A stretch of 64,000 nucleotides of DNA, taken from the NCBI RefSeq assembly GCF_006345805.1, contig NC_043007.1, positions 64,356,001 through 64,420,000 of the forward strand, written 5' to 3'. Each line of letters starts with the position of its first letter. The first letter of the stretch is position 1. This document shows, piece after piece, positions 1,606 through 35,606 of this stretch. Source of the stretch: Octopus sinensis (taxonomy: Eukaryota). The notes under the pieces are model-generated. The model was not told the DNA's origin. It worked only from the letters and a program-made list of their open reading frames with translations, and did not search any database. Both the position numbers and the translations under genes were made by a program.

Positions 1606-1610
1606 GTATG

Positions 1611-1646: not shown

Positions 1647-1649
<3 letters not shown>

Positions 1650-3953: not shown

Positions 3954-3998
<45 letters not shown>

Positions 3999-10226: not shown

Positions 10227-11923
10227 CTTTCTGTTAAGGAGTAAAATTCCACACCACTGAAAATCATGTACAGAAGAAAATCACTTGCAATAAATGTATA
10301 CACTAAATATTACTGCAACACTAAAAGTACCAAAATATTAAAAAAAAAATCCCAAAACCAGTATTTAGAAGTAATGATAATGGTTACTTTCACTAAGTTG
10401 TTATATTGAATAAGAGCTGTGATTACCTAAATTTAAAAGTTTTTAATGAGAATCTGAAATCTATAAGTATACAATATTTTACATATTTGTTATGTAGATT
10501 TTCAATCATCACAAATGCACCAAATTGCATAAGATGAATTCAATATAAATGAATTCATAATTAATTGTACAGAAAATATAAAATTGTAAACCACCTATTT
10601 ATTTATAGTGTTGAGATTTCAAAACAAAATTTAACACTAGAGACAATTTATGATCATCACATTTCCATGCCTGCATGGGAATTGGATGAGGCAGGTTTCC
10701 TATGGCCTGTTGCCCTTCCTTTTGTCAACTTCACTTGTTTCCATGAAAGGTAATACTGCCTCATGGCCTGACATGTTCTCATGGAAGATTGGAAATTGTG
10801 GACACCATTTGTACAATGGTGATACTTCTTTACAACTAGTAAGCGATATCAAAGACATGGATACACCTATATATGTGTGTGTATGTATATAACAAATGCC
10901 TTTCCGTTTACATCTCCCAAATCAACTCAAGGTTTTCGGTGGCCCAGGGGCTATAGTTGAAGACACTCAAGTTTCTTCTACAATTTATGTTTATATCATT
11001 TGTTCCACTGATTATCTGGAGTACACATCTAGTACACATTGGAGGATTTGACCGTGGACCTTGTGAGTGTTCATATTTCACACTTATAAAGCAGAATTAT
11101 AACAATTTCTTTGAATATTCTCTTTCCAAACTGTCTGGAAAGGGCTCTACATATCTTGATACCCTTCTCCAAGCCTGTTATGAATATCCTGCTGAGTTCA
11201 CATCCTAGCACTGTTGTTGTTTAGCTCCAGGTCAATTCAGTTTCAGCAAACCTATGATCAAATGCATTCCAGCCATGACTATTCAATCTTATATTCAGTG
11301 TGTAACTTAGACACACAACTATGTCCTTGTTTTAGGTTATATGATAAGACAGAAATTAGCTACTTTTAATACATGAGCTGTCATATAGAGGTTCGTTCCT
11401 TTAATACATTGTATCTACAGGCAACACATTTTCAATGAACAACTCCCATCTAGAAATAAGTATTGCAATTAGCTTGATTCAGCAAATTGTGGCAATATAG
11501 TGCAGTTGGGTATTTCATTAACTTAGTGTAGCAGTTATTGTCCCTCATTCGTCATTGACATCAATGTTGATAACTGAATTGATAACCTATAGTGGAGTTA
11601 ATGATTGTTTCATTTATATACAGCAGCAGAATTATAGGCTTTCATATAAAGCCATGTAAAGTTGAAAACATTCTATCTCTAAGAACATTACTCTTTCATC
11701 CATCTAAAGGTTGATTATTGTTTTCTATTAGGAAACCATACCTTTTTGTTTTTAACTTATTGTAGATATTAAATCTGGTTTCTTCTCTTTCAACTACATT
11801 AATTGTACATTTTTGTTTGAAATTATAAGTTTTACAGATTTCCCAAAACAGTGGCTCTTGACTATTTGCAAAAGTAATCCAAATAATTCTGTCACAGTTT
11901 TCAATGCAATTCATAAAGGATAC

Positions 11924-12023
11924 TGATGGCCTTCTTTGGCAGAGAACAGATTTCTAATTCAACAGGTTGCCGAACATCAATAAGGACATGAGACAAGTGT
12001 TGGTCAAGAAAAGTTTTGTATTC
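11924..12023 (-). CDS. MOCS3: MOCS3 exon 11
   Basis: EYKTFLDQHLSHVLIDVRQPVELEICSLPKKAI; 100 nt; acceptor ttgcAG; donor GTATCCTTTA (U12-type). Confidence 0.92.
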
Positions 12024-12042
12024 CTGCAAACAACAACAATAA

Positions 12043-12655
12043 TTTCTAATTTAGGGACAAGGCCAGAAGTTTTGAGGGGAAGAGTTAGTTGATTATACTG
12101 ACCCTACTACTTGACTGATATTTTCTTTTATTGACCTGAGAGGAATGAAATAAAAACTTCACTTAAGGATTTGAGCTCAGAATGTAAAAGAGCTGAGAGA
12201 AATACTGTAATACATTTCATCCAACATCCCACAGATTCTGCTTAAGGCGGCGAGCTGGCAGAAACGTAAGCACGCCGGGCAAAATACTTAGCATTATTTC
12301 ATCTGTCTTTAGGTTCTGAGTTCAAGGTCGACTTTGCCTTTCATCCTTTTGGGTCAGATAAATTAAGTACCAGTTGTGTACTGGGGTCGATCTAATCGAC
12401 TGCCTCCCTCCCTCAAGTTTCGGGTCTTGTGCCTAAAATAGAAAAGAATAAATTTTAAATTTATGGACAAGGCCAGCAATTTTTACAGGGGGGTAGTTAG
12501 TCCATTATATGAACCAAGTACTTGATTAGCACTTTATTTTATTGACTCTGGACGGATGAAAAGTAAAGATGATTTTGACATGATTTGAACCCAAAATGTA
12601 AAGAGCTGGAAGGAAATACTTTTTCTAATGCTAACAATTCAGACAGTCCACCACC
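12043..12655. mobile_element. Three adjacent copies of one ~200-bp SINE-like family in alternating orientation (-, +, -)
   Basis: The + copy (~12246-12452) begins GGCGGCGAGCTGGCAGAA, contains GAGTTCAA and ends CTTGTGCCTAAAATAGAAA. The flanking segments (~12043-12243, ~12456-12655) are diverged reverse complements of it. Confidence 0.75.
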
Positions 12656-13765
12656 CTTCATTGCTCTTATGGTAGGCACTAAAAATCAGTGATGCTGCAA
12701 GAATTATCAGCAAATATGTAAAAGGTAGGTAAAGTGTGGTTCATCATATATAAAGAGTTGGATATTAGTGTTGAAAAACCCCTGGAAAGGTGGAATATTT
12801 AAATCTTGGAGTCAATTTTTGTATCACTATGCTACTTAAAACACCAAAGTGGTTATTGTGGGGTGTTAAGTCTCCAGATTGAAAAACTGAAATTGTTAGT
12901 GTAATTAGAAAAAAGATAGGTTAATTTGGAAGAGATTTAGCTTAAATGAGATGCATAATGAGGTCCTACCAATAACCTCTTTCTAGTGAGGCAACTTCTG
13001 AAGAAGGTCTTTCAGAGAGTACCATATTTAGAATAGTAATGTTAGGTGCAGATTGTGGAGGTACATGGCTTAGTGGTTATGGTGTGCAATTGTGATAGTA
13101 CCTGGACTGGGCAACATATATTCTTGAGCAAAATACTTAATTTCATGTTGCTCTAGTTTACTCGGCTAACAAAACTTACTAATCTTGTGATGGACCAGCT
13201 TCCTGTCCAGGTAGGGAATATATTTGCCACAGAATTCTGGAAACTAGCCTTTTGAGGTGTAGCTAAATAGTTTGTGAGAGACCCATGTCAACCATATACA
13301 AAGATAAGTCAAAAAGGTAAAAGTTAGCAATGTAGACAGGTGTCTCACCAACACTAATTTCTCAGCTTATCCTTGTTTATCACAGTTCAACAGGCCATAA
13401 TATAGGAGTTTAAGACCAGCTATCCATGTAAGTTGATGACCTAATTCTCATAACTGATTCTGTCAAAGAATTAGAGAAGAAATTCCAAAGGTTGAAAGAA
13501 GACCTAGAATGATACTTTATACTAATTATCAGATTACAGCACACTCACTAGGAAGAAAATGGGATTATGAGCACAAAACTGAACCAATATAGTGTGAAAG
13601 ACTCAAGATATTAAAGTGTGTGAAGAACAAAACCACAGTAATACACAACAAAAAATATTAAAAGAAAAATGTGCAATATGAAGGGAAATTCCATGATGCC
13701 TATCTTTTATGTTTAAGATTTTTTTTTCAAGTAGAGTGACTTAGATTGTTCAACAACAAGAATGC

Positions 13766-14142
13766 GAGTGGCTGTGTGGTAAGTAGCTTGCTTATGAACC
13801 ACATGGTTCCGGGTTCAGTCCCACTGCGTGGCACCTTGGGCAAGGTCTTCTACTATAGTCTCAGGCTGAATAAAGCCTTGTGAGTGGATTTGGTAGACGG
13901 AAACTGAAAGAAGCCTGTTGTATATATATGTTTGTGTGTCTGTGTTTGTCCCCCCCCCCCTCAACATCGCTTGACAACCGATGCTGGTGTGTTTACGTCC
14001 CCATAACTTAGCGGTTCAGCAAAAGAGACCGATAGAATAAGTAGTAGGCTTACAAAGAAGAAGTCCTGGGGTCTATTTGCTCGACTAAAGGCGGTGCTCC
14101 AGCATGGCCACAGTCACATGACTGAAACAAGTAAAAGAGTAT
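13766..14142 (+). mobile_element. Full-length tRNA-derived SINE with internal microsatellite
   Basis: tRNA-like head GAGTGGCTGTGTGGTAAG...GGTTCAGTCCC; same family as the inverted copy at ~37478-37925 and the partial copy at ~54150-54305. Confidence 0.8.
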
Positions 14143-15461
14143 CAGGGTAGTAAATTAGATGAGCATGCTTTTATAAGAGCACTAAACTCAATATAATTAA
14201 AATACATCATGCTAAATTGATATGAAATCAGCTGTTACACTGATTTGAACAGGAAGACTGCATCAATTTAATTACAATAACAGTAACAAACTACCAAAAT
14301 TTATCAAACAGAAACCCAAGTTAACAATAAGATATCTCTCAATTGTTTAAGTAAATTCAACCTAAATAACAATAAATGGTAATTATAAGTTTAAACATTA
14401 AGCAATAGCTTATTGTCTTTGATGTTATGACTGCATAATGTATCCCATTCCATTTCAATGAACAAAATATTTAGTACAGTCCTTAAACCATATTAAAACA
14501 ATATCTGCTGTGTTTTGGAACAATGGCCTACATTGCTCTTCATGTGGTTACTTCCATGCCATAAATCAATAGAGATAAGAATATCTAGTGTCAACCACAA
14601 TAGAAGCTGCAGCTTCCTTAAAATACAACAAATAGAAAATAATATATTTTGTCTTCAGTAACCATACAATGAAACCAGGTACGAGCTGGATATATGTGTG
14701 TGTGGTATAGTGGGACAACAGAAAAAGCAAACCCAAACAACAGATGCAGACAAATTCAGCCTCCTCATCAGTTGACAAAATATCATCACAATTTTGAGCT
14801 TTTTAACAATATTGTCAAGTTTGTCAGAGTCAGCAACATATGCTACTTATGTATAAAGGACAGAAATTGAGACAAGTACAATAACAAGAAAAGAGGTTTG
14901 TAAACCAAAAAGTAAATAAAGATGAGTTATGAGGAAAATAGGCAAGGATAAAACAACACAGATATTTGTAGAAATATAAAATGTCTTCTGACTGAATGAC
15001 AAAAATCAGAGTTGTGCAAAGTAATGCTAATAGGAAAGATGAGAAAAAATAGAAAAGGTTTTTGGGTTTTTTTTAAATGAAAAAAAAATAGACAAACCAG
15101 ATGGAAATAAAGCTACTGACAAATAGAATGAGTAGTCAATTGAAAAAAAGAATGGGTAACTTGAAAACAGGAAGATCAAATGGTATCTTTTGGGAAGGAA
15201 AAAAGGGAATTCATGCAGATGGATTCAAAGACAGAGAATGAGAGAGGAAGGGCTGTAGCAGAGATAATACAGAGTAAGTAGGGGTAATATGAAAAAAGGG
15301 AAAAAACAAAAAGATAAACAGCTACAAAGAAGGAAGGTAAGCGGAGAGATAAATGAATGCAAGAAAGGTATGTAAATAGAGAAAAATATAAGGATGGTTA
15401 CCTGAATGATGCGATGATAGGTGAGCCAGTAGAGAGTGTCTACCATGATCTCTGATCAGTG

Positions 15462-16745
15462 GTTCCCGCTCTAGCAAAGATCAGCCCTGAGATAAACTTG
15501 TCCAAGTCAGAGGTCAAGAACATCAACTGCAGCCTCCATCTTAGAGGTATGTTCACTACTTCATCAAGTACAGGTGACCTCAAAGGAGGATATCCTTACC
15601 TTTGGTTCACTGATCTTTCTGCTTGCCATTCTCTCCACCTTCAGGTCTAAGCTCCTGCAGCTTGAAAAATGTCCATCAAGCTCTGTTCCTGTAAAGGAAC
15701 TGCTTCACCATGCTAAAGCTATTGTACATCCTCCACAGTGCTTCTCAATGCCTGTATTCAACAGGTCACTAAAGAGATATGCAACATTCAGTTTGACGAC
15801 AGTGGATGGCAACAGGTCATCTTACTCATCACATATGGCGACCTTGGCTTCATTTTCCAGTCTCACTGGCCTTGCTGGCTTTTCTCTCATTGATGACTTC
15901 TTACCGTGTCTTCATTAATAGGGTTCTTCACAACACAGCTGAACCACCTGTGATTGAGGCATGTGAAGCAGCTTATGCAACATGGAGCCAGCTCAGCCTG
16001 TGTCCCACTGATGTCCATCTCCTCTCCTGTATGGACGTCTGGACCTCTCAAAAGAAATGGGACATCATCCAGTGTAGTATGACAGCAGACAAGTTAGTGC
16101 ACCAACTTGACCAGCACTGTCTGGCATGTTTCTGCTCAGCCTCTGAGCCTCACAGAAAAGCTTGGATCAATGCAGTGCCATCACTTGCAAATGGCACTAA
16201 CCTTGATGGCAACTGCCTGCACATTGGTGTTTCCCTGAGGCTTGGTCTTCAGATCTGTGAGCCTCATGAATACCGCTGCAGGTCCATTATGGATTCTTTT
16301 GGCCTCCACCCACAGTCATGCTGTCATAGTGCTGACTGCCTTTAACAAGATCATAAAGCATGGTGTAGATGTCACAGGCTTCCCTTCCCAGCTCAAGCCA
16401 GCAGGGCTAGACCGAGGGGATGGTAGAAAGCCGGGAGGTATTACAATTTTCCCATTCTGTGGCAGTAGACCACTCATCTGGGATGCCACATGTTGTGACA
16501 TAATCTCCAGGGGTATCAGTTACTCTCTGACAGGTTTATGGTTGAGCCTGTGGCGGTTGAGACCTCCAGCATCCTTAGTCCGCAGACCATATCCCTGCTC
16601 ACTGCTATCAGGGCAGAGATTGCTGTCTGCAAATGGAAGCCCAGAGAATCAGAGTGGCTGTTCCAGTGCATCTCCCTTGCTATCATCCAGGGCAATGCCT
16701 TTTACATATTGTCTGCTGGTGCCATGAGAAATGTTTCTATATTGT
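15462..16745 (+). mobile_element. Decayed 3' part of a CRE-clade-like non-LTR retrotransposon (restriction-like endonuclease)
   Basis: Frameshifted ORFs carry QKKWD, AWINAVP, SLRLGLQICEPH..C...D.FG.H..SC (zinc knuckle), P.GLDRGDGRKPGGIT, LIWDATC, PVAVET and ISLAIIQGNA. This motif order is typical of CRE/SLACS-type RLE elements. Confidence 0.75.
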
Positions 16746-16779
16746 GAGAGTCAAGATTCTCTGTATTTGAGTAATACAA

Positions 16780-17345
16780 AGAGAATGGGAAAAGACATTA
16801 TTTTAATGAAAACAATAGGCATAGAAAGCTAAGCATAAAGAAATAAGAAAGGGTAGATAAATATATAGAGATATAAAGAGAAGATATCACATGATAAAGG
16901 GCAAAGATAATGTACCTTTCAGCCTGGTTTACACAAACAAGGGGATAGGAAAAAAAAAAATTAAGACTGACCGTCAAAGTGATCAATTCAAAACAATGGC
17001 TAGCTTGAAAAATGGGACGGTCATGTGGTGCCTTTTGGGAAAGGAGAGAGAGGAAGAGTAGAGGTAGGTAGAGAGTAAGATAGAGAAAGAGAGACAGATA
17101 GGGAGGGGAAGGGCCATTGCAGAGATAAAACAGCTGGGAAGGGTGAAACAAGATTAATAAAGTGAACAACAAAGATAAATGGATACAATAGCAGAAAGCT
17201 AAATGGATGTAAACATAAAAAAGAAAGATACATAGAGAAAAAGATAGAAAGATAATTAAGTGGAGCTGGTAGACAGAGTAAGCAATAGAAAGGTAAGTAT
17301 AAGGAAGAAGAGACAAGTGGACAGATGGATAGAGAGAGAAAGAGA
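16780..17345. repeat. Purine-rich (GA/GAA) low-complexity tract
   Basis: Direct reading; similar tracts at ~15000-15420, ~20200-20520 and ~22880-23060. Confidence 0.7.
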
Positions 17346-18406
17346 GGCCTCGAGTAAAAATCTCAAATTAAACACCAGGAGATGGAAAAACACCATTAAC
17401 CAGTAGAAAGGTCAATTCAAAAAAGAACTGGTGGTCTGAGATTCAGGAAGAAGGCTTCATGATGCCTTATGAGAGAGGAGAAAGAGAAAGGTACAGGTGG
17501 GTTGACAGAGAAGGAGTGCCATTGCTGAAATAAAACAGAGTATGGATGCAACTGGTACTGTTGGTTACAATGATGAGAGTTCCAGTTGATCCGATCAATG
17601 GAACAGCTTGCTTGTGAAATTAACATACAAGTGGCTGAGTACTCTACAGACATTTACCCTTAATGTAGTTATCAGAAAGATTCAGTGTGACACAGAATGT
17701 GACAAGGCTGGCTGTTTGAATTACAGGTACAACTAATACAAAGATAGTTATGAAGTGAAAATGATGGACAATGAAAGCAATAAGGAAGTATAAAGAAAGA
17801 ATGAAATCATCATCTAATATCTGTTTTCCATGCTGGCATGGGTGGGATGGTTTGACAGGATCTGGTGAGCCACAAGTCTGCATCAAGCTCCAATGTCAAC
17901 TTTAGCATGGTTTTGATGACTGGATACCCTTCCTAACATCAATCATTTTAGAGTGTGTACTACGTGCTTTCTTTGTGCTACCAGCACTAGTGAAGTCACC
18001 AAGTAACTTGCAAGACAGGAAAAGAACACAAAAAGGTAAAAGTCCCTAAGTGGAGAGGGAAATATTTGAGGAGGGTGGAGGTGAATTTATGCCAAGTGTT
18101 GGTGGGTAGTTTAAATGCAATAAGGAACAAGCCTGTCTTGCTATAGTGAAGATACATGGCTAGCCTACATGGGACAAAAAGATTGTAGTGATGGGGAGCG
18201 AGAGCAAATACTTAAGGAGCTATATATCAGATATAAATAACCAATCAGTTATGGCTGCATCGTAGATTTTCTTGATGGAGCTAACAACTCCATGAACACA
18301 AATTAAAAACTATTGTAAATCAGAACACTTACACATAATGTCTGGTTGCAATAAGGAAAAGGAAATTTACAAGTTGTGTGGCAACTAATTGGTTGTATAA
18401 ACTTAC

Positions 18407-18454
18407 CGCAGCTGAAATTCGGTGTTCATTTGACAAAGTGGATACATGAGTTTC
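18407..18454 (-). CDS. MOCS3: MOCS3 exon 10 (48 nt)
   Basis: ETHVSTLSNEHRISAA fills exactly the 16-residue gap corresponding to human CRSLQLLSPEERVSVT. Acceptor ttttcAG, donor GTAAGT, phase 0 on both sides. Confidence 0.8.
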
Positions 18455-22419: not shown

Positions 22420-22580
22420 CTTATCATTTGATCGAGAGCCACAAAACTGTTCGTAGTCTATCAGCTCTGGTTTTGACCCATCTCCACAAGCAATGCAGTT
22501 CTTTTGACTAGGACGAAGTTTTACTTTGTGAAACGAGCAATCCATACCATCAAACAGAAGTAAGTGCTGTTTCAGAGAAG
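22420..22580 (-). CDS. MOCS3: MOCS3 exon 9
   Basis: (S)SLKQHLLLFDGMDCSFHKVKLRPSQKNCIACG...LIDYEQFCGSRSNDK contains the second CxxC. Acceptor gccttaacaatagatttAG; donor GTAGGT. Confidence 0.92.
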
Positions 22581-24390
22581 CTAAATCTATTGTTAAGGCA
22601 TAATGCATTTACCATATTACAGTTGTCTTTGTGTTTACAAATTTATGCAAATATGTGACAGGTACAGGAAATTAATTATAAAAAGAAAAAAGGATGAAAG
22701 TGTGGATATGTGGTTAAACAGTATGTTTTTCAAATGCATTTCTGTGTTTGATACTATAGCACTAATGAATGACTTAAACTTTGTAAGTGAAATTTTTGTA
22801 TCATTCTGTCTTATTAATAATATTAACATGCCAATTTATTCTTTTTATACATATGGAACTGTGGCATGAGTCACACTTACTTCGGAGGAAGGTGTGAGTG
22901 ACAAAGCAAGAAAAAGGTAGTGAGAGAGAAAGAGAGAGAGTGAAAGAGACAGTGAATGGTAACGGTGTTTCTTTTGTGTTTTTAAATGTTTCAGAGAGGA
23001 AGTAAGAGAGAGTGAGAGAGAAAGAGTGAGTGAGAGAGAAAGAAAGAGAGAGTGAAAGAAATAGTGAATGGTGACAGCGTTCATTTTATTTTTAAATGTT
23101 TATCACATCGCAAGGAAAGTAGACACATAAATCGAAAGAAAAGTTGATACATACACACATTGTTAAATTAAAAGCAGGAGAGAGGAGAGACACAAAGAAA
23201 GTGAGAGAGACAGTAGATACATAGATCAAAAGAAAAGTTGATATATAGATACATACACACATTGTTAAATCAAAGACAAATAACTACAGCAAATACTGGA
23301 TGTCACTTTCACTTTTCATTACCACATGAGGATAAAATTAACTTGCAAGTGGCTGAGCACTCCATAGATATGTATATCATTACCTTAGTTTTCAGAGAGA
23401 TTCAGCCTCACACAGAACAACTCATTTTGGCCAACTGAATGGACTGGAGCAAGATAAACCATCAAGAAAAAGATCCTATACAGGGGCAGGAAAATCCTTT
23501 TAGTCATTAGGGTCACCATGAGTGTTAATCAGGTCCTAACAGCAGCCTTTGTGGGTCGCACAGATCTGGAAGCCAAGCCCCCAGATAAACACCAATGAGC
23601 AGGCTGTTGTTATCAAACTGAGCATGAGTCAAAGGTAAATACACAACAGAACAACAATTATTTTGTCGTAGCTTTCACTGCTTATACTAAACACATGACG
23701 TTTTTGCCTTATGATATGGAACATTTCCTTTCCTTTCACTCTTTTTTAAAAAAATGGCACTCGGTCAGTTGTGATGACAAGGTTCCTGTTTATCTGATCA
23801 ATGGAACAGTCTGCTTGTAAAATTAACATGCAAGTGGCTGAGTACCCAACAGACATACATACCATAAGGTAGATTCAGGGAGATTCAGCCTCACACAAAA
23901 TGTGACAAGGCTGGCCCCTTGGTTTTGCCAGCTGAGTAGACTGCAGCAAGGTGAAGTAGAGTAATTTGCTCAAAAACACGGTGCGCCACAGGGAATTATA
24001 CTCATGACTTTACGATCATGGGCTCAATATCCCTAACCACTTAGCCACATATCTGCACTCTATTAACTGTAGAGAAAAGGAATGAGGCGATAGAGACAGA
24101 GAAAGGAAAGCCTCAGTCATTTACAATGACAATTATACTGAAATACAATTGATCTTTTCTAGCTTCTTTACTTTTAACAATGAAGAAGAGGGAAAGACAT
24201 TTAGTAAGGAATAGAAGGAAAGACTAAAGTGATAGTATGTTGTCAACTTAATGTGACAGTCCCATGAAAGGGAAGAATTCCACTGTTATTTAGCCCAAGG
24301 AAACACCATTTCCTGTTGGACTTGACACATTTCCTGTGTCCTTATGTTTTCAAAGTGGAGATAAGCACCTCCACCCAGCAAAGCCAGCAT

Positions 24391-24431
24391 CCAGAGACTA
24401 GTTTCAGAGTCATTGCTCATCATCAGTCTGG
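24391..24431 (-). ncRNA. Minimal type I hammerhead ribozyme-like motif (Penelope-type)
   Basis: Minus strand reads CCAGA-CTGATGA-TGAGCAATGACTCT-GAAA-CTAGTC-TCTGG: perfect 5-bp stem I, both core boxes, GAG/CTC stem II with an unpaired T on each side, palindromic stem III and a GUC triplet. Confidence 0.65.
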
Positions 24432-24894
24432 AGTAGAATGGCTTGCTAGCTGAATTTTTTTATTTAGACAATAATGTCACATATAGATAATACAGCACAG
24501 GACAACACATACAAATGAAGTTAATGTGAGTTCAAATGAACCTTATTTGAAAATTTTAATGAAAAGATGAATTTTATATTATATAGTCTTTTTTTTTCTC
24601 CCTTTGCCTGGAAAAAAAATGACCTAATTATTCAAAAAGAAAAAGAGTAACAGGATTAGATAGAGCGAAAAATGGGCTTTAAAATGATATATAAAGTGAT
24701 ATATATATCATAAAATGATATATAAAATGATATATACATCATTTAAAACCAAAATTAAAAATTCCAAAAGAGACAACCTAATAGAAAACCAGAGCCAGAG
24801 ATGAAGGATCCTGTCACGAGTCCTTGCATTCTAGTTTTCCACACACATTCTTTCAGCACAGCAACTGTACAGAAAAAAAACATACTTCACCTTC

Positions 24895-25160
24895 ATTATT
24901 TACATTCGATGGATATTTGTCCTCATTTTATTTGTTGTTAACACAACGTTTCGGCTGATATACCCTCCAGCTTTCATCAGGTGTCTTGGGGAAATTTTGA
25001 ACCTGGGTTCTCATTTCTAAGATATTTTTTGATATTATTACTATTCTTATTGTTCACGTCACTGCTTGGAATTGAACTTAGAATCTTGGGTTTAGTAGCC
25101 CATGCTCTTAACCACTACGCCATATGGAGTGAATTTAGGGCTTATAAATCTAATATTTTG
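24895..25160 (-). mobile_element. Penelope-like element 3' end (pseudo-LTR) with tRNA-like segment and hammerhead motif
   Basis: Reverse complement matches ~36580-36860, which directly follows a GIY-YIG ORF. A/B-box-like segment at 25058-25127; hammerhead-like motif at 24940-24985. Confidence 0.75.
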
Positions 25161-25567
25161 TATGAATAGATTCAGTAGGTAGAAACTGAAAGATGACCAT
25201 TGTATATTTACACATATGCATGTGTGTTTTACACTTGTGATTGCTTGTACAATGCAGCAGGTATGATGTCAATTTCTCTTGTCAACAAATTATCCAATCA
25301 CATCGAGCCTTTGAAACCATGTGGAATAAGAGATGTTTTATTCAAAAAACAGATAAAGATTCATATCAGGAAGGGCATCTGGCTGTAAAACAATGCCTCA
25401 GATAACATATTCATCAACCCAAGCAACTATGGAAAAATGGACATAAAACAAATGTATCAATATTTGCATATTCTAGACTTTACCAAACTGTCAATAGCTC
25501 CTAAAGTAAAAAAAATACTGATATAGATCAGACAAAATACAATTATCAGCTGTCATTTGAAGGATAC

Positions 25568-25630
25568 ACTGTAAACCACAAGCAATTTTAATGACTTCTA
25601 AGGCCTGTAAACATCCAATAATTCCAGGAA
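25568..25630 (-). CDS. MOCS3: MOCS3 exon 8
   Basis: (I)PGIIGCLQALEVIKIACGLQ; 63 nt; acceptor ttttttcAG; donor GTATCCTTCA (U12-type). Confidence 0.93.
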
Positions 25631-26001: not shown

Positions 26002-26099
26002 ATGTCCACCTTTCCTTTAAGCAATTCACAGACAAATAAAACTGACAAATGAAAATAGGGTTTCTTCTCCCTCAAAGAAAGAAAAAAAAAACTGTTTTG

Positions 26100-27692
26100 T
26101 TGCAAGAGCAATACGCAACATGCACTTCAAATAACATGAACAGTTTTATGGTTTTTGTAGTGCTCCGGTGTTTTCAATGTTCTGCCTAATCTTGTGATTC
26201 TTCTGGGGGTTGGCATTGAGCACTTCTCATGCATCTAGCCATTATTTTGTGTTTCTGTGTTGTTATCAGGAGGAGCATGTGTAATTTCTTTCCTTGAGTC
26301 AAGTTGAGTAACATGTTCCATAGAGTTTGTAGGGTCTGCTGGATGGTTGTCTGTCTCTATATTGTAGGGTGATCTGGCAGGTGTTTCCATCTGACTGGTC
26401 TGTTCATACTGTCTGTCTATGTCTATGCTAGTATCTCTCAGTTCTCTTCTGTTTCTCTTCTCTGCAAATCTCCATGCATTGTTTTCACAATGTAAGACTT
26501 TGGTTCTTTACATTGTCTTGCTTTTCTCCAGGTATCCAACATTTGTTGTTTTTGTCAAGGATTCATATAGCTTGTCCTTTGTGCAATGGAGGTAATTCCA
26601 TCTTTGCATGCTGGTCATATGCAGTTTTCATTTGTATTTTCTTTTCTTCAAGAAGTCTTCTCTGTCTTTGAGTTTCATGACAATAGCTCCAGTGTAATGG
26701 CACAAGTGTTGCCCAATAGGATCTCAGCAGGTGACGGCATCTTTGAGTTAAATGGTGTGGCTCTTAGATTCAACAATGCATTGTTTATGTTTGCTTTGCT
26801 TTGTTCACATTTTTGGATTGTCTTTTTAATTATCTGTACCTTCTCTCTATGAATCCATTTGATTGGTGATGATGTAGTGTGTTGAATTCTCCATTTCTGT
26901 GAATTGTTGAAATGGTTTTCCGGTATATTGAGGACCAATGTCACTGAAAATTTCATCAGGTCTGCTGAAGAGAGACATAGTCTTTTTGAATTCCTCTGTG
27001 ACTGCTTTGCTTGTGGTTTCGCTGAGGTGAGATACAATTGGAAATATGAAGTAGTCACAAATGAGCAGATAAGTTTTGCTGTTGATTTCAAATAGATCTG
27101 TTCCTAGTTTTTTTCATGGTGCACTGGGAATGACATCAGTGGTTCTTTGTTGTTGGCAGTTGCAAATTCTTGGCATATTTGACAGGATCTGCATTTCTTC
27201 AATGTCTTTGTTGATGTTTGTCCAATAGACATCTTCACAAGCTGTACTAGAATGTCATGTTGTATCAACACTTGTGTCCCTTCGAAGCTGATTCCATCTT
27301 CTACAACCAATTCATCTCAAAAAGACCAGTATGTTTATGTCATCTAAGAGTTGTTTGATGCTGTCCGGTCACCCATAGGTGATTGTTTCCATCAGTGTAG
27401 CCAAAGTAGAATCTCTGCTGGTGAACTCATGCAGTTGGTAACGTTTGTTGATGGAAAAATTGACAAGGTCAAATTCAGATTGGTGGATTTCTCTTGCAGT
27501 CAATTCAATCCCATCCACTTTCAAATCCAGGTCAATGTCTTCATTGTCTTCATGGTTTGAGAGGTAAGAGAGGGTGTCGGCCAATGTCATGGTATGAATT
27601 GGGCAGTATTTGATTTTGAAACCATATCCCTGAATTTTTTGGAGCATCTTTTGTAGTCAGCATGGTGCTTGAAGAAGGGGTTTTTCTGTGAT
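26100..27692 (-). mobile_element. Decayed Gypsy-like pol remnant (end of RNase H, integrase zinc finger, core and C-terminus)
   Basis: Fragments LQKMLQKIQGYGFKIKY...LADTLS, C..CQ.CQE, QHTTSSP...VQIIK and LLNLRATP...SPAEILLG, with many frameshifts. Confidence 0.8.
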
Positions 27693-28630
27693 CCCCATCA
27701 GGTGCAATACTATATGATAGCTAGTAATGGACACAGTTGCTCTATGAAAGTCAGATTTACAGTTCTCTGTTCTAAGAACCTAGCTAAAAGATATTTCTTT
27801 AGGTTACCAGATTCTTGTGCCAAAATAAATGTTAATGGTTCAGAGCAGTGCCACTCAACAGAACTTTGTAAAAATACTCTTGATCCTAAGTGGAACCAAC
27901 ACTATGACTTATATATCGGCCAAAAAGATTCTGTTACCATAAGTATTTGGAACCATAAAAAGATCCAAAAGAAACACGGCACTGGCTTCTTCGGATGTGT
28001 ACAAATCACTTCCAACAGTTGAAAGATACTAGCTTTCAACAGCTGGAATTACAGAAAAGAAATGCAGATTATCATAAGCCTTATATCCAGAGACAAAGAT
28101 AGTTCAGCCCCTGCTACCATTATCACACCTTCTATTCAGCCAGTTATACTAAATGACCCCAATGAACTTCCTGATGGCTGGGAAGAAAGGACAACTGCTG
28201 ATGGTAGATTTGAGTTTGTCAACCAATGTTACAAGAACAATTTGCTGTGAGCAACCTACAAGGCCCGCATCAGAAACACCATCCAAACGTTTATCAACTG
28301 CCATTATCTCAGATCCAGCTGTGGTCATGTCTCCTGATAAAGAGACCACTGGCAATGTCAGAAGTAGTAATAGCCAAAATACCAGTAATACTGGTGACAG
28401 TAATAGCAGCAGCAGTAACTGTACAAGTGTAAACCACAGCTCGTCAGCAAACAACAGTAGCAGCAGTAACAACAACACTCCTTCTATAGCTACAAACAAT
28501 AACAACGGAATGAGCAGTAGTAACAACACTGGTGGTGATGGCAATAATAGTTTGGGTATGTTCTCCAGAAGACAGTCTATGCGGCACTGAAATTACTTGA
28601 ATAGATTCCATTGCTATCATCAGATTGTGA
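27693..28630 (+). pseudogene. SMURF2: Processed (intronless) 5' fragment of the Smurf HECT E3 ligase: C2 domain, first WW domain and N/S-rich linker
   Basis: KVRFTVLCSKNLAKRYFFRLPD...CHSTELCKNTLDPKWNQHYDLYIG..DSVTISIWNHKKI...GFFGCV matches Smurf1/2 C2, followed by LPDGWEERTTADGR (WW1). Contiguous with no introns; premature stop at 28020-28022, frameshifts and deletions; ATG at 27714. The symbol denotes the family, not a specific paralogue. Confidence 0.9.
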
Positions 28631-28776
28631 CATACAAGAACTCCAATAACGCAATGCAGAGAGGCTGGTTGTCTATTTGACTGCTGTTCCCCCTAGCCAC
28701 TGAGCTGCCTGCCTTTTATCTGTGACAGGGTATTTAACAATGTGAAACTAAATACATTTAGTTTCGTATCGTTACA
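28626..28776 (-). repeat. 5' LTR (151 bp) of the same Gypsy-like element
   Basis: Direct repeat of 25852-26001 with TG...CA termini on the minus strand. Confidence 0.8.
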
Positions 28777-29084
28777 ACAATTTCAAAAGGAGTGGTTTAG
28801 TAGTTACCATCATTGGAGAGATAAAAAGCATTTTGTCTGTCACTCTAATGATTCTGCCTATTTACAGTCTGTGCACAAAGCCAACAATTTTGAGTAGAGA
28901 GATTTACTCAATACCATCATCCCTGGGATTTGACTGGTACTTTATTTTATCAAACTCAGAAGGAAGGCAGAGTAAATGTTGGCAGAATTTGAAATCAAAA
29001 TGTAAAGAGCTGGAAGAAAAACTACAAGGGATTTTGTTTGATGCTCTAACGATTATGTCAATCTACTGCTTTCATAATTGTTTC

Positions 29085-29712
29085 TAATTTAGACACAGGA
29101 CCAGTAATTTTAGGGGAAGAGGTTAGTCAAATCAATCTATGAATTTGACTGGTACTTTATTATTTTATCCACTCTGAAAAGATGAAAGGAAAGTTGACTT
29201 CAGTGGGATTTGAACCCAAAATATGAAGAGCCAGAACAAATACTGAAAGACATTTGCTTGATGACCTGATGATTCTGCCAACCCACCAATATTAACAATA
29301 ATAATTCTTTCAAATTTTGGCACAAGGACAGCAGTTTTGTCAGGAGTAGAAAATCAATTACATAGACCTGTGCTTTACCTGTACTTATTTACCTCAAGAG
29401 GATGAAAGGAAAAATTGACCTCAGTGAAATTTGAACTCAGAAAGTAAAGATGGACAAAATGCCACTAAGCACTTTGTCTGGCATGCTAATGATTCTACCA
29501 GCTTGCCACCTTAACAACAATAATAATAATGCTTTTTTTTATTTAGGCACAAGGCCAGCAATACCATCAACCCAGTACTTAACTGGTACTTATTTTATTG
29601 GCTCCCAAAATGAGGAAACCCAAAGTTGACCATGGTGAGGTTTGAATTCAGAATGTAAAGAGTGATAAAAAATACTGCAAAGCTTTTTGTCTGATATTCT
29701 AACAATTCTGCC
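29085..29712 (-). mobile_element. Three head-to-tail copies of the ~200-bp SINE-like family
   Basis: The block TTTAG/GGCACAAGG(A/C)CAG...GGAAA(A/G)TTGAC...TTTGAA repeats at ~29085, ~29303 and ~29538; another copy at ~33640-33840. Confidence 0.7.
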
Positions 29713-29745
29713 AAATAATAATATAAATTAAATATAAATACTTAC

Positions 29746-29854
29746 TCACGCCCAAAACCCCTCCATCTGAGCAGTTAGTTACTGTTTCTGGTAAAGGAGG
29801 CTGAGGGAAGAGACAGCGGTAACAGGGACCTCCATCATAGTTGTAAACAGTCAG
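29746..29854 (-). CDS. MOCS3: MOCS3 exon 7
   Basis: [36 protein letters not shown] contains the first CxxC and the conserved TNC Cys. Acceptor tttacAG; donor GTAAGT. Confidence 0.95.
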
Positions 29855-29971
29855 CTGTAAAACAAAATAAAACTATGAATGCCAATCAGGCTTTGATTTG
29901 TTTGGTTTATTTGTTAATCTTTAATTTTAAAGTTAACTTAGTAGATTATCAATTAGTAAGTTTTATGTAGT

Positions 29972-30290
29972 GAGGGCGCGTGGTTTAGTGGTTAGGGCAT
30001 TCGGCTCATGATCGTAAAGTTGTGAGTTCGATTCCCGGCGACGCGTTGTGTCCTTGAGCAAGACACTTTATTTCACGTTGCTCCAGTCCACTCAGCTGGC
30101 AAAAATGAGTTGTACTTGTATTTCAAAGGGTCAGCCTTGTCACTCTCTGTGTCATGCTGATTATCCCCGAGAACTACGTTAAGGGTACACATGTCTGTGG
30201 AATGCTCAGCCATTTGCACGTTAATTTCACGAGCAAGCTGTTCCGTTGATCGTATCAGCTGGGACCCTCGTTGTCGTAACCGGCGGAGTC
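29972..30290 (+). mobile_element. tRNA-derived SINE (second family)
   Basis: A-box TGGTTTAGTGG and B-box GTTCGATTCC, then TGTGTCCTTGAGCAAGACACTT. Inverted fragments of its tail occur at ~17555-17720, ~23340-23450 and ~23760-23990. Confidence 0.8.
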
Positions 30291-30593
30291 TTTTGAAGTT
30301 TTATGTAAAGAAGGGATTTTTTAAATCTTTAATATAAATAAAATAGATTTAATAAAAGAGGAGAAACATGCTCATTTACATTTAATGAAGATAAAAAAAA
30401 ATATTCTGCTTTGTATTTTTATCTTTTAAATATGTGATCCTATTATAACCATAATCATCAACAGTAATGTTAATTCCTCTCACTACTACATGCCCATTAT
30501 CACAACCTGCGTTATAACTTCCACTGGCACGATTATAAATGTAGAGTTTTCATGCCATTAACACTGACATTGTTGCACTCAAGTTTCTTTTTA

Positions 30594-31865
30594 TTAGGTC
30601 ATCAAGTATGAAATTTGTAGAAAAGAAAAAAAAGTTTGCTAATGTTTTATAAATACAAGGAATAGTTTTATTCATCAAAGTATGTACCCATATCGTCAAT
30701 ACACTTTTGCCATTTCAGCGATAGCTTATCCTGCCTGGAACTGTAAAAGCCTGGCAATCTTGAATCAATAAAATCTTGGAAGGCTTGTTTTACAGCATTG
30801 TTGGAATTAAATTTTTTTTCTTTCAAAAAGTTATCCAAATTCTGGAAGAAGTGGTAGTCAGTGGGGGCAAGATCAGGTGTGTATGGTGGATGATGGAGAA
30901 CTTCCAACTCCAACTCCTGAAGTTTCGCAAAAGTCATTTTTGCGATGTGTGGTTTGGCATTGTCTTGCGATAAAATAGGAGTGGATCTATTGACTAATCT
31001 AGGCCGTTTCTTTCGTAAGTTTCTGCATCATTTGGTCCAGTTGGCTGCAGTATACTTCGGCTGTGATTGATGAGCCAGGTTTAATGAAATCAGAATGGAT
31101 CACACCTACATCAGACCACCAAACACACACCATTAGCTTCTTTTTGATGAATTTCGCTTTTTATACTGTGTTTTGGTGGCTCGTCTTTGTCTAACCATTG
31201 TGCTGAATGTTTACAGTTGTTGCATTGGATCCATTTTTCATCACGTTACAATTTGATTACAAAATAATTCATTTTTGTGACAAGAAAGTAGCATAATGCA
31301 GGCTTCCAAACTTTGCCGTTTCAGATTTTCCTGGAGTTCATGTGGAACCCACTTGCTCAACTTTTTCATTTCACTGATTTGAACTAGGTGAGTCAATATT
31401 GTTTACTTGCAAACACCGAACAACAACGCTAATTCATGGGCAGACTTGACAGTGGCTTTCAGTTCATCATTATCCACCTTTGCTTCTGGTCGGCCGCGTT
31501 GCTCATTTGTGAGGTCAAAGTTACCAGAACGAAATTTTGCAAACCAATTTGATACTGTCTACTGTGTAATAACATTAGAATGAAATACTCCATTAATATT
31601 CCGAGTTGTCTGTGATACTGTATATCCAAGAAAGAACTCAAATTTCAAATCTGTACAAATTTCCGACTTATCCATCTTTTAACAAAAATAGCAAAAAACA
31701 ATTTATGAATACTTTATAAATTGCAGAATAAGTTAGAATAAAGAAATAGATGTATCAGCTTTGTAACAAAAAATAAAGATTGTCAAAATATAATAAAGGC
31801 GCAAAATGAGCAGCTGTCAAAGATTACCATATACCTTACTACAAATTTCATACTTGACAACCTAA
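30594..31865 (-). mobile_element. Full-length but inactive mariner (Mos1-like) transposon, 1272 bp
   Basis: 27-bp TIRs TTAGGTCATCAAGTATGAAATTTGTAG / CTACAAATTTCATACTTGACAACCTAA (2 mismatches) with TA on both sides. Transposase pieces WFAKFRSGNFDL..E.RGRP and HPPYTPDLAPTDYHFF; stops and frameshifts. Confidence 0.92.
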
Positions 31866-31982
31866 TAAATGTGTAAGGCCCCTACCTACCTGTATTTGTA
31901 ATAAATACATGAGTCAGATTTTGGGTGGTGTATTCTAAATGCAGTCATTTTTTTTTCTAGTTTTTCTGTCCAGTTCATTTAA

Positions 31983-32495
31983 CCCCTTGACAATGGTTGA
32001 TGCAAATATGCGATCACACTTTTGCTTGCCTACCCACGGTTAACGTAAATATATGATGTAGAGATGCCCTACATCTATCACAAACTTTTTAGCGGCTGAT
32101 GTATGTTTATGTTTGCTATTGTGTACTTTATCTCTTTAGGTGCATGCGCTCTCAGCCCCGTGCATTATCTTAGCTATTTTAGGTTCAAGTCATGAGACTA
32201 GCAGTAGACCAATGACATGTGGATACTTTACGTGCATAATACCGTGTTTTGAGTTGTACCACACACAAGTTATTTTTTTAACTTGAGCAGAATAACTCAT
32301 GCATATCATATTATGATAAATAGCTTCATATAGTTCGTTTTCATAAACCGGGAGACATAAATGTACGATGCTATGTTATTGTAACGGTGAACATAAGTAG
32401 ACGCGAGCTCGTTGGCACTTGTGTTTTTGTGTGGCCTCGTTAGATAAAAAAAACCCAGTGTCTTGCATGCTTCGGGTAATATTGGCGTCAAGGGG
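31983..32495. mobile_element. Non-autonomous piggyBac-type MITE
   Basis: TTAA|CCCCTTGAC ... GTCAAGGGG|TTAA. Confidence 0.75.
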
Positions 32496-32866
32496 TTAAC
32501 ATTCAGTTGAGAATGTTATAACTACAACTTATTAGTAAGTCATTTAGAGTATTGATGCCTATAATCTTTTATTTGCATTTAACTCTGCAGTAATTATTAA
32601 TATGTCTATAATATTCCTTCCTAATCTTTCATGTGTTTCTGTTGTACCTTGTTTAGTACATTGAATCCTAAATATTCCTGCATTTGCTCTAATTTTTTTA
32701 TCTGTATATTATTTAATGTTATTAGTGTTCTTGATAAATTTTCCCCTTTTCAAAGTTGCCATGACACATTTTTCAAATTTAAATTTTATACAAATTTCTC
32801 AAATAAAAAAAAATCCCTAAAGCAAATAAAACAAGTGTCTTCAAATAGATTGAAGAACAAACTCAC

Positions 32867-32984
32867 CTGTCCTTCAAATCGTAGAGCACTACCAGAAACC
32901 AGAGGCTTGCCAGAGATGACACATGCATCATTAACAAGGTATCGTGTGGCAACATTGTCAGAGGCATCTATCACAATGTCATAA
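32867..32984 (-). CDS. MOCS3: MOCS3 exon 6
   Basis: [39 protein letters not shown]; donor GTGAGT. The 5' boundary is inferred from frame and homology because no AG is present (see findings). Confidence 0.92.
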
Positions 32985-35360
32985 CACAGATAAGTTAAGG
33001 AGAGCAGAATAATAGGATGGTTTAACAGAGCAATGTGAATAACAATTTATGATATGAATAGAAAACTTTAGTCATATTTTTTTCATAGGTTAGTTACAAA
33101 GACTATACCCATGATCTTTTCCAGGTCCTTTGGGATTGTAAGCAGAGAAGTTATTCTCAGTCCAGAGAATGCTGAATGCTGACAACAGAACTGATTCTGT
33201 TAAAAGTATCCAATAACCAGGTGCTAGTATTAATCAAGGCAATGTGTTAAAACTACTGTCTATCTAAGAACTGGTACAGTCCCCCTGTCAGACATCCATA
33301 AAATTTCTACCAAACGAATTACACTCACAAGATTTTAGTTGACTTACAGCTATGGAAGAAGATATTTAAACACTTCAAAGTGTAGAGTAGTGAGATTAAA
33401 TCCAAAACCATAGTTGTGAAGCCAAAACTATTCTTTACATCAACACAAGAAAAGGAGATATAGTAATTCAAATTGATTCCAATATATTACTGATATTTAT
33501 TTGATTAACACCAGAGTACTGAAGAACTCATTCCAATCCTTTTGATGTTTTAACATGTATAGTTGAGGTATTGAGGTCAGATTAAAGGTAGGTGTAATGT
33601 ACTACTAAATATTACATTTTAATACTGATATTTTCAAATTATAGCATAAGGCCAGCAGTTTTTAGTGGGAGGAATGATAGTTGATTATATCTACCCAAGT
33701 ACCTGATTAGTATTTTTACATAAAGGATGAGAGACAAAGAGGCCTTTCGTAGTGTTTGAACTCGGAACATTAAAAAAATCAGGAGAAATGCTGCTAAGTA
33801 TTTTGTCTGACACACTAATAATTCAGCCAACTCACTGCCTTCCATCTTAATACTAATAATAATAAATGTGAAACCTGAGGTCTTTTACAAATGTGAACGT
33901 TGGAATACTAATGCAAGGGCTTAAAAAAAAAACAAAGAAAATAGTTCCAGCTAAGGATTTAATTGAATACCTTAAATGCCACACCATGGTGATAACTAGT
34001 GTGAAAGGGAAGAGGTTAGAAGTCCTCCCATGACAACTAAGCTAAAACATGTTAAGCTGCTGAAGTGATGATCAGAAGGTCAAACCTTGACATGGATACC
34101 TTAGTAAAAGTACATCACCTAAGGCTGTAAAATAAACATCAATTTCATTTCACTTTTGGATACACAATGTAACTTTTGGTACATATGGAATAGATATGTC
34201 AGAGGTGGCAGAGTCATTCAATCCATGTTGATTAAATACTAAAATACATGTTAAACTATTAAAACAATATATTGTTATTTAGTTCTGGCCAGTAGATCTA
34301 TGGACAAAGTATTTTAAACTGTGACTATTCTTTCTATTTTCACACAAGTATATTCAAGTGTACATTATGCCAAGTGTCATCCCTTCTTTAAGAGTGTGTT
34401 ATTTGTTTTAGCAAGTCAAACAACTACCTTTCACACATTCATTCACTTGTTGTACCTGGAAGCAAAGTGTGTGATTCTACTTGCCTAAATTTGCCTAGCT
34501 TTGATTTCAAACACACACACACGTATATATGTGTGAATTTCTGCTAGCATGTTTGTCAGTCAGTCTTATTGTCTATCTGTCTGTTTGAAAACTAAATCGC
34601 AAAAGCTTTTATTTTCACCACCATCAGTCACCATTGCTTCTATCACATTCACTACACACAAGCATGCATGCACGCATGCGCATGCATGCACACACGCACT
34701 TCAAATCAACAATCCCTAGGTAAATTTTACATTTTCAAAACTATCTTAGCCATTCTATGGTAGGAAACTGGATGTTAATGAGAAAAACACTTTTTAAAAA
34801 ATGATTTTAATATTCTAATTCCCATCCAGTCTCCATTGGCATAGATGATAGAGAGATGGATTACATATATTCATCAAGGTTTCAATTTTAGAGTTCCATA
34901 AAAGTAAACTTTGCCTTTAATCTAATTAAAGGAATAGTAAAATATCAGTTATGTTAGAAAAATAGCATAGGAGGATCAATACATTGCAATAATATAAAAA
35001 GATTATACATACAACATTAATATAGTAGGGTCAATACATAGTAGTAATGTAGGAGGCTCAGTACACATAGCAGTAATTATAGTTGGGACACTAGAAATGT
35101 AGTAGTGATATAGTAGCCTCAGCATACATAGCAATATTGTAAGATCAATATACAGAGCAGTAATATAATAGAGTTTACACACATAGTAGTAATATAGTAG
35201 ATTTAATACACATAATTATACACTGATACATATTTAAGATCCGTTTCCCAAAGAAAAGTTAATGGAACCAGTTAAAGATCCCTCAGTATATTTTGGTAGA
35301 GAAAAGATTGATGCTAAATGTTCCACATTTGAATAAATAACAGAAATATCAGTTTTATGT

Positions 35361-35402
35361 CTCTCTGATGAGGTCATAATAAGACTGAAACACATGCAGA
35401 GT
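35361..35402 (+). ncRNA. Degenerate minimal hammerhead-like motif
   Basis: CTCT-CTGATGA-GGTC-ATAATAA-GACT-GAAA-CACATGC-AGAG: stem I and stem II are present, but the U of the GUC triplet is missing. Confidence 0.45.
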
Positions 35403-35606
35403 TGTTTTTTGTAACTGCCAAGATAATGAAAATAACACTAGTCATGGTCAAATACTGTTTTCTTTTCTCTCACACTGCATAATTCATTGTAGTTAACATT
35501 TTTTTTCTTAAATTCTAACACAAATTTAACCATTGTCAGACAATTGATTAGGTTATAATTATTCAGTCAAATGATCCACCAAAGTATAGAAGCAGTTAAA
35601 GGATAC

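Follow-up and report, generated by a model that had tools for sequence, protein, structure and literature searches.

Minor, or U12-type, introns represent fewer than 0.5% of introns, and the reason for their persistence is an old open question. Their hallmarks, as set out in review, are a conserved donor, a conserved branch site near the 3' end (with an optimum of 11-13 nucleotides, nt) and the lack of a pyrimidine tract. Genes with several of them are scarce: the MIDB database counts, for human and for mouse alike, 50 genes that contain two minor introns and 3 that contain three, and the human figure corresponds to 3 of 714 minor-intron genes (Olthof et al., 2019). The closest described system to the one studied here is zebrafish mocs3, whose "Intron 5-6, 101 nt" has been typed as U12 with IAOD (Weinstein et al., 2022, PMC9501576, Tables S3 and S4). 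In zrsr2-null zebrafish embryos, retention of mocs3 intron 5 is significantly increased and the mRNA is reduced, with a log2 fold change of -1.37 and an adjusted p of 1.2e-5 (PMC9501576). The human gene has a different history, as MOCS3 is among 25 "orphan retrogenes" that have replaced a multi-exon parent (Ciomborowska et al., 2013, PMC3548309, Table 1). Here we describe the MOCS3/UBA4 gene of Octopus sinensis within a 64,000-nt stretch of contig NC_043007.1 (positions 64,356,001 to 64,420,000 of the forward strand, assembly GCF_006345805.1), called the window below. A first-pass annotation of this DNA, made from the letters alone, had proposed that three of the introns of this gene are of the U12 type.

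The gene lies on the minus strand of the window. Its coding region, the three introns in question and their splicing signals are as follows.

Positions 10006 to 44331, minus strand: coding region of MOCS3/UBA4, ATG through stop, split by 11 introns into 12 exons, 448 amino acids.
Positions 32985 to 35606, minus strand: intron 5, predicted U12-type, phase 2, 2622 nt, GT-TG termini.
Positions 35598 to 35606, minus strand: intron 5 donor GTATCCTTT, 15.2 bits, joint best in the window.
Positions 32993 to 33004, minus strand: intron 5 branch-site 12-mer CTCTCCTTAACT, 14.6 bits, best in the window.
Positions 22581 to 25567, minus strand: intron 8, predicted U12-type, GT-AG, phase 1, 2987 nt.
Positions 25559 to 25567, minus strand: intron 8 donor GTATCCTTC, 14.4 bits.
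Positions 22591 to 22602, minus strand: intron 8 branch-site 12-mer TATGCCTTAACA, 11.7 bits.
Positions 10227 to 11923, minus strand: intron 11, predicted U12-type, GT-AG, phase 1, 1697 nt.
Positions 11915 to 11923, minus strand: intron 11 donor GTATCCTTT, 15.2 bits.
Positions 10232 to 10243, minus strand: intron 11 branch-site 12-mer TACTCCTTAACA, 13.2 bits.

The scores are those of log-odds matrices for donors and for branch-site 12-mers, derived from 77 human minor introns (Olthof et al., 2019, Table S2) against the base composition of the window. The donors of introns 5, 8 and 11 reach 15.2, 14.4 and 15.2 bits, compared with a median of 14.0 and a maximum of 15.2 bits in the human training set, and they occupy ranks 1-3 among the 127,982 positions scored on both strands of the window. 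Read on the minus strand, the introns start with GTATCCTTTAAC (intron 5), GTATCCTTCAAA (intron 8) and GTATCCTTTATG (intron 11). The octamer GTATCCTT occurs in three copies in the 64-kb window, both strands included, and all three are found at the ends of exons 5, 8 and 11. The motifs CTCCTTAAC, GCCTTAAC and CTCCTTAAC stand shortly before the exons that begin at 32984, 22580 and 10226, respectively, and the corresponding branch sites are of the TCCTTAAC type, scoring 14.6, 11.7 and 13.2 bits (human training median 11.4). Branch-site matches of at least 11 bits number seven in the window, three of which adjoin the acceptors of introns 5, 8 and 11. The distance from the branch A to the 3' end is 10 nt for intron 5, 12 nt for intron 8 and 7 nt for intron 11. 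All three introns thus fit /RTATCCTTT at the donor and TTCCTTRAY near the 3' end, where the slash here and below marks the splice boundary.

The other eight introns of the gene have donor scores of -5.0 to -14.6 bits and branch-site scores of at most 4.9 bits, so that with the human U12 matrices the scores are bimodal, without overlap between introns 5, 8 and 11 and the remaining eight. In these eight, the donors resemble GTRNGT and the pyrimidine tracts end in YAG. The match to the U1 consensus is 3 of 9 positions in the U12-type donors versus 5-8 of 9 in the other introns. The pyrimidine fraction at positions -20 to -4 is 0.53 in intron 8 and 0.65 in intron 11, neither of which has a distinct polypyrimidine tract; in intron 5 this window falls mostly on the branch motif itself. 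The boundaries, motifs and phases (2, 1 and 1) that the first-pass annotation had given for introns 5 (35606-32985), 8 (25567-22581) and 11 (11923-10227) were all reproduced exactly on the minus strand in our gene model. Its descriptions of the other eight introns as ordinary U2-type and of introns 8 and 11 as lacking a polypyrimidine tract likewise agree with these measurements, and the matrix scoring of all 11 introns that it had called for separates the three (14.4-15.2 bits at the donor) from the eight.

For comparison across animals, we took the genomic loci of ten annotated MOCS3 proteins, mapped their junctions by exact back-translation and set the introns on a protein alignment. Ten of the 11 octopus intron positions, by column and phase, are common to most of the sampled bilaterians and the sponge. 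Intron 1 alone varies, and it sits in the poorly aligned N-terminus. U12 type together with the same column and phase was found for intron 5 in 9, for intron 8 in 8 and for intron 11 in 9 of 9 bilaterians. Typed by their motifs, the introns at the three positions are as follows.

Three octopods: intron 5 U12-type with GT-TG termini; intron 8 U12-type; intron 11 U12-type.
Liolophura (chiton): intron 5 U12-type with GT-AG termini; intron 8 U12-type; intron 11 U12-type.
Pecten (scallop): intron 5 U12-type with GT-AG termini; intron 8 U12-type; intron 11 U12-type.
Lingula (brachiopod): intron 5 U12-type with GT-AG termini; intron 8 U12-type; intron 11 U12-type.
Asterias (sea star): intron 5 with a U12-type donor only and AT-AC termini; intron 8 U2-type; intron 11 U12-type.
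Takifugu (pufferfish): intron 5 U12-type with GT-AT termini; intron 8 U12-type; intron 11 with a U12-type donor and a weak branch site.
Hemiscyllium (shark): intron 5 U12-type with AT-AA termini; intron 8 U12-type; intron 11 with a U12-type donor and a weak branch site.
Xenia (octocoral): intron 5 absent; intron 8 with a U12-type donor only; intron 11 U2-like.
Oscarella (sponge): introns 5, 8 and 11 all U2-type, in a gene with introns of about 50 nt.

The U12 motifs are conserved where the flanking intron sequence has diverged. Because the same positions, phases and U12 type recur in a shark and a teleost, in a brachiopod, in molluscs and, for two of the three introns, in an echinoderm, the state appears to be at least as old as the bilaterian ancestor. 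The three U12-type introns of the octopus gene are, on this comparison, an old inheritance and not a cephalopod gain, and the differences among lineages are best explained by later conversion to the U2 type or loss in some of them. In Takifugu and Hemiscyllium, intron 11 combines a perfect U12-type donor with a shared variant branch motif, TTTCCTRATAC, that is one T short of the consensus. The Xenia gene model was taken for the intron 8 position only. This model (585 amino acids) has its last three exons repeated in tandem with identical intron sequences, the repeat being joined by an impossible 7-kb AT-TA "intron" (gene 501-10786), which points to a local duplication or to two copies merged in annotation.

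The position of intron 5 carries five terminal pairs across animals (GT-AG, AT-AC, GT-AT, AT-AA and GT-TG), all of which have been documented among minor introns (Larue and Roy, 2023, Table S1). The major spliceosome is not expected to tolerate these termini, and varied terminal pairs at one orthologous position are in themselves good evidence for processing by the minor spliceosome. The octopus end of this intron went unmentioned in the first-pass annotation. The flanking exons are needed here.

Positions 35607 to 35681, minus strand: exon 5, ending ...ATT CAA CA, with the U12-type donor directly after it.
Positions 32867 to 32984, minus strand: exon 6, starting T TAT GAC (His176-Tyr-Asp) and coding for the core of the ThiF domain.

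Intron 5 ends ...CTTATCTGTG/TTATGAC, with TG and not AG as its last dinucleotide; the acceptor context reads ...CTCTCCTTAACTTATCTGTG/TTATGACATTGTG, the intron terminus ...CCTTAACTTATCTGTG/T, and the predicted splice junction ...ATAATTCAACA/TTATGACATTG... Splicing from GT to this TG yields CA/T, the codon of His176, followed by conserved ThiF residues. The end is identical in O. bimaculoides. In Argonauta it reads ...CTCTTTAACTTATCAATG/CTATGAC: the TG and the 10-nt spacing are unchanged and the His codon differs only synonymously (T-to-C at the first exon base), so that GT-TG is fixed at intron 5 in three octopods. Among conserved animal minor introns, GT-TG accounts for 29 cases (0.039%), whereas GT-AT accounts for 0.43% and AT-AA for 1.1% (Larue and Roy, 2023, Table S1). 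Intron 5 thus fits, by its sequence, the GT-TG non-canonical subtype of minor introns, which is rare but documented.

Given this rarity, we weighed the alternative that the annotated GT-TG end is an artefact and that another 3' site is used, for example the AG at 32890-32889. Existing annotation lends it some weight: in the O. vulgaris gene model (P0003), exon 5 is spliced to an AG that lies in frame 96 nt into exon 6, with the reading ...IIQH/ALRFEGQ, and an older O. bimaculoides model (P0005, UniProt A0A0L8HNT4) also mis-joins this region, with exon 2 jumping into exon 6 and exons 3-5 skipped. In the P0003 protein, however, 32 ThiF-core residues are missing and the C-terminus is spurious. 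The AG at 32890-32889 is the next in-frame AG, but it lies 106 nt downstream of the only branch site, far beyond the U12 range, and its use would delete the same number of residues from the nucleotide-binding core (...PLVSGS), which is conserved in all orthologues. Nearer substitutes fail as well. No AG is present between 33066 and 32968, and there is none 8-25 nt past the branch A; the AG at 33066, taken as acceptor, would bring in an in-frame TAA, and the nearest AC, 17 nt past the branch A, would shift the frame. The TG site is used by two RefSeq models and by the Argonauta model, Argonauta keeps the TG, the spacing and the His codon together, and a cephalopod transcript assembly (P0006) carries ...IIKDYDIVVDASDNV. 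An artefactual end is hence very unlikely, and the mis-joined O. vulgaris and early O. bimaculoides models look like a consequence of the non-AG end itself.

Two further alternatives concern the type and the age of the introns. If the motifs had arisen by chance, the major spliceosome would remove introns 5, 8 and 11; about 2.5 GTATCCTT octamers are indeed expected by composition in 128 kb (an estimate from base counts), and GT-AG termini are formally compatible with the U2 type. Yet all three octamers stand exactly at in-frame exon ends of a single gene, each with a partner branch site of high score 7-12 nt before the acceptor, an arrangement with a joint chance of about 1e-9 or lower. A chance origin also sits badly with motifs kept without conserved flanking intron sequence, with donors that fit U1 poorly, with the lack of a pyrimidine tract and with the varied terminal pairs of intron 5, and the orthologue comparison effectively refutes it. 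The other alternative, that the three U12-type introns are specific to cephalopods or molluscs, follows what the first-pass annotation had implied in placing them "in this lineage", and molluscs are relatively rich in minor introns. It is already refuted by the same comparison, as the same positions, phases and type recur beyond molluscs in Lingula, Takifugu and Hemiscyllium, as they do in Liolophura and Pecten, while Asterias shares two of the three, and intron 5 of zebrafish is typed U12. A companion suggestion, that vertebrates had lost this control, does not hold for vertebrates as a group: pufferfish and shark keep all three introns and zebrafish has its U12-typed intron 5. Retroposition, which had been offered as the route of loss, is right for human MOCS3, where it has already been published.

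Several observations weigh against the interpretation that introns 5, 8 and 11 are genuine U12-type introns of at least bilaterian age. The spacing of intron 11 (7-8 nt in Octopus, 10 nt in Argonauta) is below the published 11-13 nt optimum. The branch sites of intron 11 in Takifugu and the shark score 1.3 and 3.6 bits, with a matrix that is human. The basis for the octopus junctions is gene models (RefSeq and GenBank) together with the logic of the reading frame, and for intron 5 the O. vulgaris model, from one pipeline, predicts the alternative junction discussed above. Xenia and Oscarella, finally, limit the dating to "at least the bilaterian ancestor". With these points taken into account, we assign a probability of about 0.93 to the reading as a whole, namely that introns 5, 8 and 11 are of the U12 type, that the other eight are of the U2 type, and that this state dates back at least to the bilaterian ancestor, with conversion or loss in some later lineages.

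From established knowledge of minor splicing, U11 and U6atac would recognize the /GTATCCTT donors and the U12 small nuclear RNA (snRNA) the TCCTTAAC branch sites. No polypyrimidine tract would be involved, and closeness to the branch point would determine the 3' cleavage site. Such a distance rule would explain why intron 5 can end in TG and why, in intron 11, the first AG, 3 nt past the branch A, is skipped; only the second AG preserves the frame. Excision of the octopus introns by the U11/U12/U4atac/U6atac spliceosome is thus a prediction, for which the retention of zebrafish intron 5 upon loss of zrsr2 provides indirect support. Retention of any one of the three would lead to a stop, after 13 extra codons for intron 5, 25 for intron 8 and 7 for intron 11. 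Since each retention truncates the protein, a functional MOCS3 mRNA would need three separate minor-spliceosome events, and output should be more sensitive to minor-spliceosome activity than that of a gene with one U12-type intron. This predicted dependence on three minor-splicing events is structural.

Whether the dependence amounts to control is another matter. The first-pass annotation had suggested that the enzyme may be rate-limited by minor splicing, and in its broadened form this idea states that selection keeps three serial U12-type introns as a regulatory throttle, making output a steep function of minor-spliceosome activity; such a throttle would cover molybdenum cofactor (Moco) synthesis, tRNA wobble thiolation and urmylation. 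The three introns have been of the U12 type for more than 500 million years in many lineages, in a configuration found in only 3 human genes. Splicing of the U12 type proceeds 2-5 times more slowly and has been put forward as rate-limiting (review), any single retention would truncate the protein, and the zebrafish mRNA is about 2.6-fold down when intron 5 is retained upon Zrsr2 loss. Against a throttle, the U12 state appears dispensable: intron 8 is U2-type in Asterias, all three are U2-type in Oscarella, two are absent or converted in Xenia, and the human pathway runs on an intronless retrogene. The broadest survey argues that most minor-intron retention is owed to neutral processes. The zebrafish table flags only intron 5, and its zrsr2 data show that mocs3 depends on the minor spliceosome, which falls short of regulation: dependence in a mutant is not physiological regulation. 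We consider a selected throttle unlikely, although it deserves more weight than the alternatives above. More doubtful still is its extension in which non-tetrapod MOCS3 is held under a selected triple minor-spliceosome lock, with the sulfur relay as a steep read-out, and the human-lineage retrogene has uncoupled the pathway.

The gene model behind these results was obtained by locating exons with a rough MOCS3 query, which served as a probe only. Exon boundaries were then set by reading frame and splice signals, and the product was assembled by hand. The resulting 448-residue protein is identical at every residue to RefSeq XP_029642587.1 (MOCS3, Octopus sinensis), and its identity reaches 97% with the protein of O. 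bimaculoides and 82% with that of Argonauta hians; the DNA is accordingly that of O. sinensis or of the very close O. vulgaris. All of the top protein matches bear the name MOCS3, with full-length identities of 53-97%. Pfam detects a ThiF domain (4.3e-80, residues 67-301) and a Rhodanese domain (6.8e-11, residues 341-440) in the product, and its CxxC pairs, like its rhodanese loop CHHGNDSQ, line up with those of MOCS3 orthologues. By these features the product is assigned as the MOCS3/UBA4 adenylyltransferase-sulfurtransferase, with an N-terminal ThiF/E1-like and a C-terminal rhodanese domain, in agreement with the original identification of the gene. From orthology, octopus MOCS3 would adenylate and thiocarboxylate MOCS2A and URM1. 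The gene structure recurs unchanged in the RefSeq model of O. bimaculoides and in the Argonauta model. Besides exons 5 and 6 above, the coding exons are as follows.

Positions 44236 to 44331, minus strand: exon 1 (coding part), followed by intron 1, U2-type, phase 0.
Positions 39878 to 40019, minus strand: exon 2.
Positions 38476 to 38568, minus strand: exon 3.
Positions 37196 to 37316, minus strand: exon 4.
Positions 29746 to 29854, minus strand: exon 7.
Positions 25568 to 25630, minus strand: exon 8.
Positions 22420 to 22580, minus strand: exon 9.
Positions 18407 to 18454, minus strand: exon 10, 16 codons (ETHVSTLSNEHRISAA), found by an exhaustive search for exons from phase 0 to phase 0.
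Positions 11924 to 12023, minus strand: exon 11.
Positions 10006 to 10226, minus strand: exon 12 (coding part, to the TGA stop), with the rhodanese active-site loop CHHGNDSQ.

Exon 10 is confirmed by the identity of the product to the RefSeq protein. The spliced junction of exons 5 and 6 had no match in the metagenome contig collection that was searched. An Rfam scan of the whole window at gathering thresholds gave no match, and thus no snRNA or small nucleolar RNA genes in the introns.

The introns and flanks of MOCS3 hold a number of other elements, listed by position.

Positions 2304 to 2645, plus strand: last exon of a kinase of the MARK/Par-1 type; KA1 domain (Pfam 6e-19), end ...ELKL, U2-type acceptor.
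Positions 27669 to 28022, plus strand, continuing to about 28330: open reading frame with a C2 domain (Pfam 8.8e-13), within MOCS3 intron 7 and antisense to the gene.
Positions 40707 to 41192, plus strand: Tc1/mariner DDE_3 transposase fragment in MOCS3 intron 1.
Positions 42817 to 43143, plus strand: repeat, in intron 1, of the open reading frame at 50785 to 51453.
Positions 47043 to 47607: near-perfect palindrome, upstream of the MOCS3 start codon by about 2.7 kb.
Positions 49417 to 50493, plus strand: reverse-transcriptase open reading frame upstream of MOCS3.
Positions 50785 to 51453, plus strand: open reading frame downstream of the reverse transcriptase.

The MARK gene is convergent with MOCS3, tail to tail, at about 7.4 kb from the MOCS3 stop codon. 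Near it, at plus-strand position 418, a ATATCCTTG motif was considered as a U12-type signal and set aside, being without exon context; the acceptor of the KA1 exon is of the ordinary U2 type. The C2 reading frame in intron 7 runs into an in-frame stop that is followed by a WW-like motif (LPDGWEERTTADGRFEFVN), and has the look of a decayed, intronless retrocopy derived from an E3 ligase of the NEDD4/Smurf type. O. bimaculoides carries this insert in its intron 7 too, at about 76% amino-acid identity versus 97% for MOCS3, a difference that suggests a pseudogene. The palindrome has nested arms of 87 and 192 nt that are 98% complementary around an 8-nt centre, with mirror-image open reading frames on both strands. 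Either a foldback element or an artefact of assembly could account for it. The two copies of the reading frame near the reverse transcriptase and in intron 1 have near-identical translations. In intron 2, the plus strand offers a U12-like pair, a donor GTATCCTCT at 39370 (13.5 bits) and a branch motif TATTCCTTGACG at 39586 (12.8 bits), 216 nt apart. We rejected this pair as an intron: coding context is lacking, and the next AGs fall only 3-5 nt past the branch A. It is probably due to chance.

Comparison with known systems places the octopus gene among described phenomena. In the library that was searched, no paper brings MOCS3 together with "U12-type" or "minor intron", nor did one turn up on U12 for Arabidopsis CNX5 (At5g55130). 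Novelty with respect to U12 databases had been left conditional by the first-pass annotation, and is partial: zebrafish mocs3 intron 5 is already in IAOD, while for the octopus introns we found no discussion in text. O. sinensis, Lingula and Asterias are all among the species run through intronIC by Larue and Roy (2023), whose bulk data almost certainly contain the octopus MOCS3 introns. The GT-TG, GT-AT and AT-AA termini seen here are all documented in that work. What differs is that one orthologous position carries five terminal pairs, with GT-TG fixed in three octopods, and we found no description of that pattern. The five pairs make a compact illustration of the flexibility of the U12 3' site, and the non-AG end matters in practice, since it breaks gene predictors, as in the O. 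vulgaris and early O. bimaculoides models. Overall, this is a previously undiscussed and well-conserved case with a non-canonical twist; it brings no new mechanism and leaves the knowledge of U12 splicing unchanged.

A pathway-wide theme is harder to defend. The first-pass annotation named XDH and AOX1, both Moco enzymes, as genes with several U12-type introns; MIDB lists two minor introns for XDH (adjacent in mouse) and one for AOX1, so that this holds for XDH only. Neither MOCS3 nor any of GPHN, MOCS1, MOCS2, MOCOS, SUOX and NFS1 appears in the minor-intron tables of human and mouse. With the six other genes absent, and with XDH and AOX1 being paralogues, the link is thin and we did not retain it. 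For MOCS3 itself, the absence is explained by its being intronless in these species.

The zebrafish gene is the nearest experimental counterpart. Its intron 5-6 is presumably orthologous to octopus intron 5, having the same intron number at a position conserved in Takifugu and the shark, and it is likewise U12-type, experimentally Zrsr2-dependent, with a transcript that falls when it is retained. It differs in length (101 nt versus 2622 nt in octopus) and the octopus copy ends in TG; moreover, the zebrafish work lists intron 5 only and does not mention introns 8 and 11. The multi-minor-intron genes of human and mouse resemble the octopus gene in having several U12-type introns amid U2-type introns in one gene, but the triple state of MOCS3 is observed only outside the lineage that carries the retrogene. 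Replacement by a retrocopy accounts for the single-exon human MOCS3, and in the human lineage the intronless retrogene would have replaced the whole gene, U12-type introns included, a point on which the orphan-retrogene paper is silent. MOCS3 is thus one of few genes with three minor introns, at positions held from molluscs to sharks, and it offers a natural contrast for U12 function in a housekeeping enzyme, between the triple-U12 parent of fish, sharks and invertebrates and the intronless human copy.

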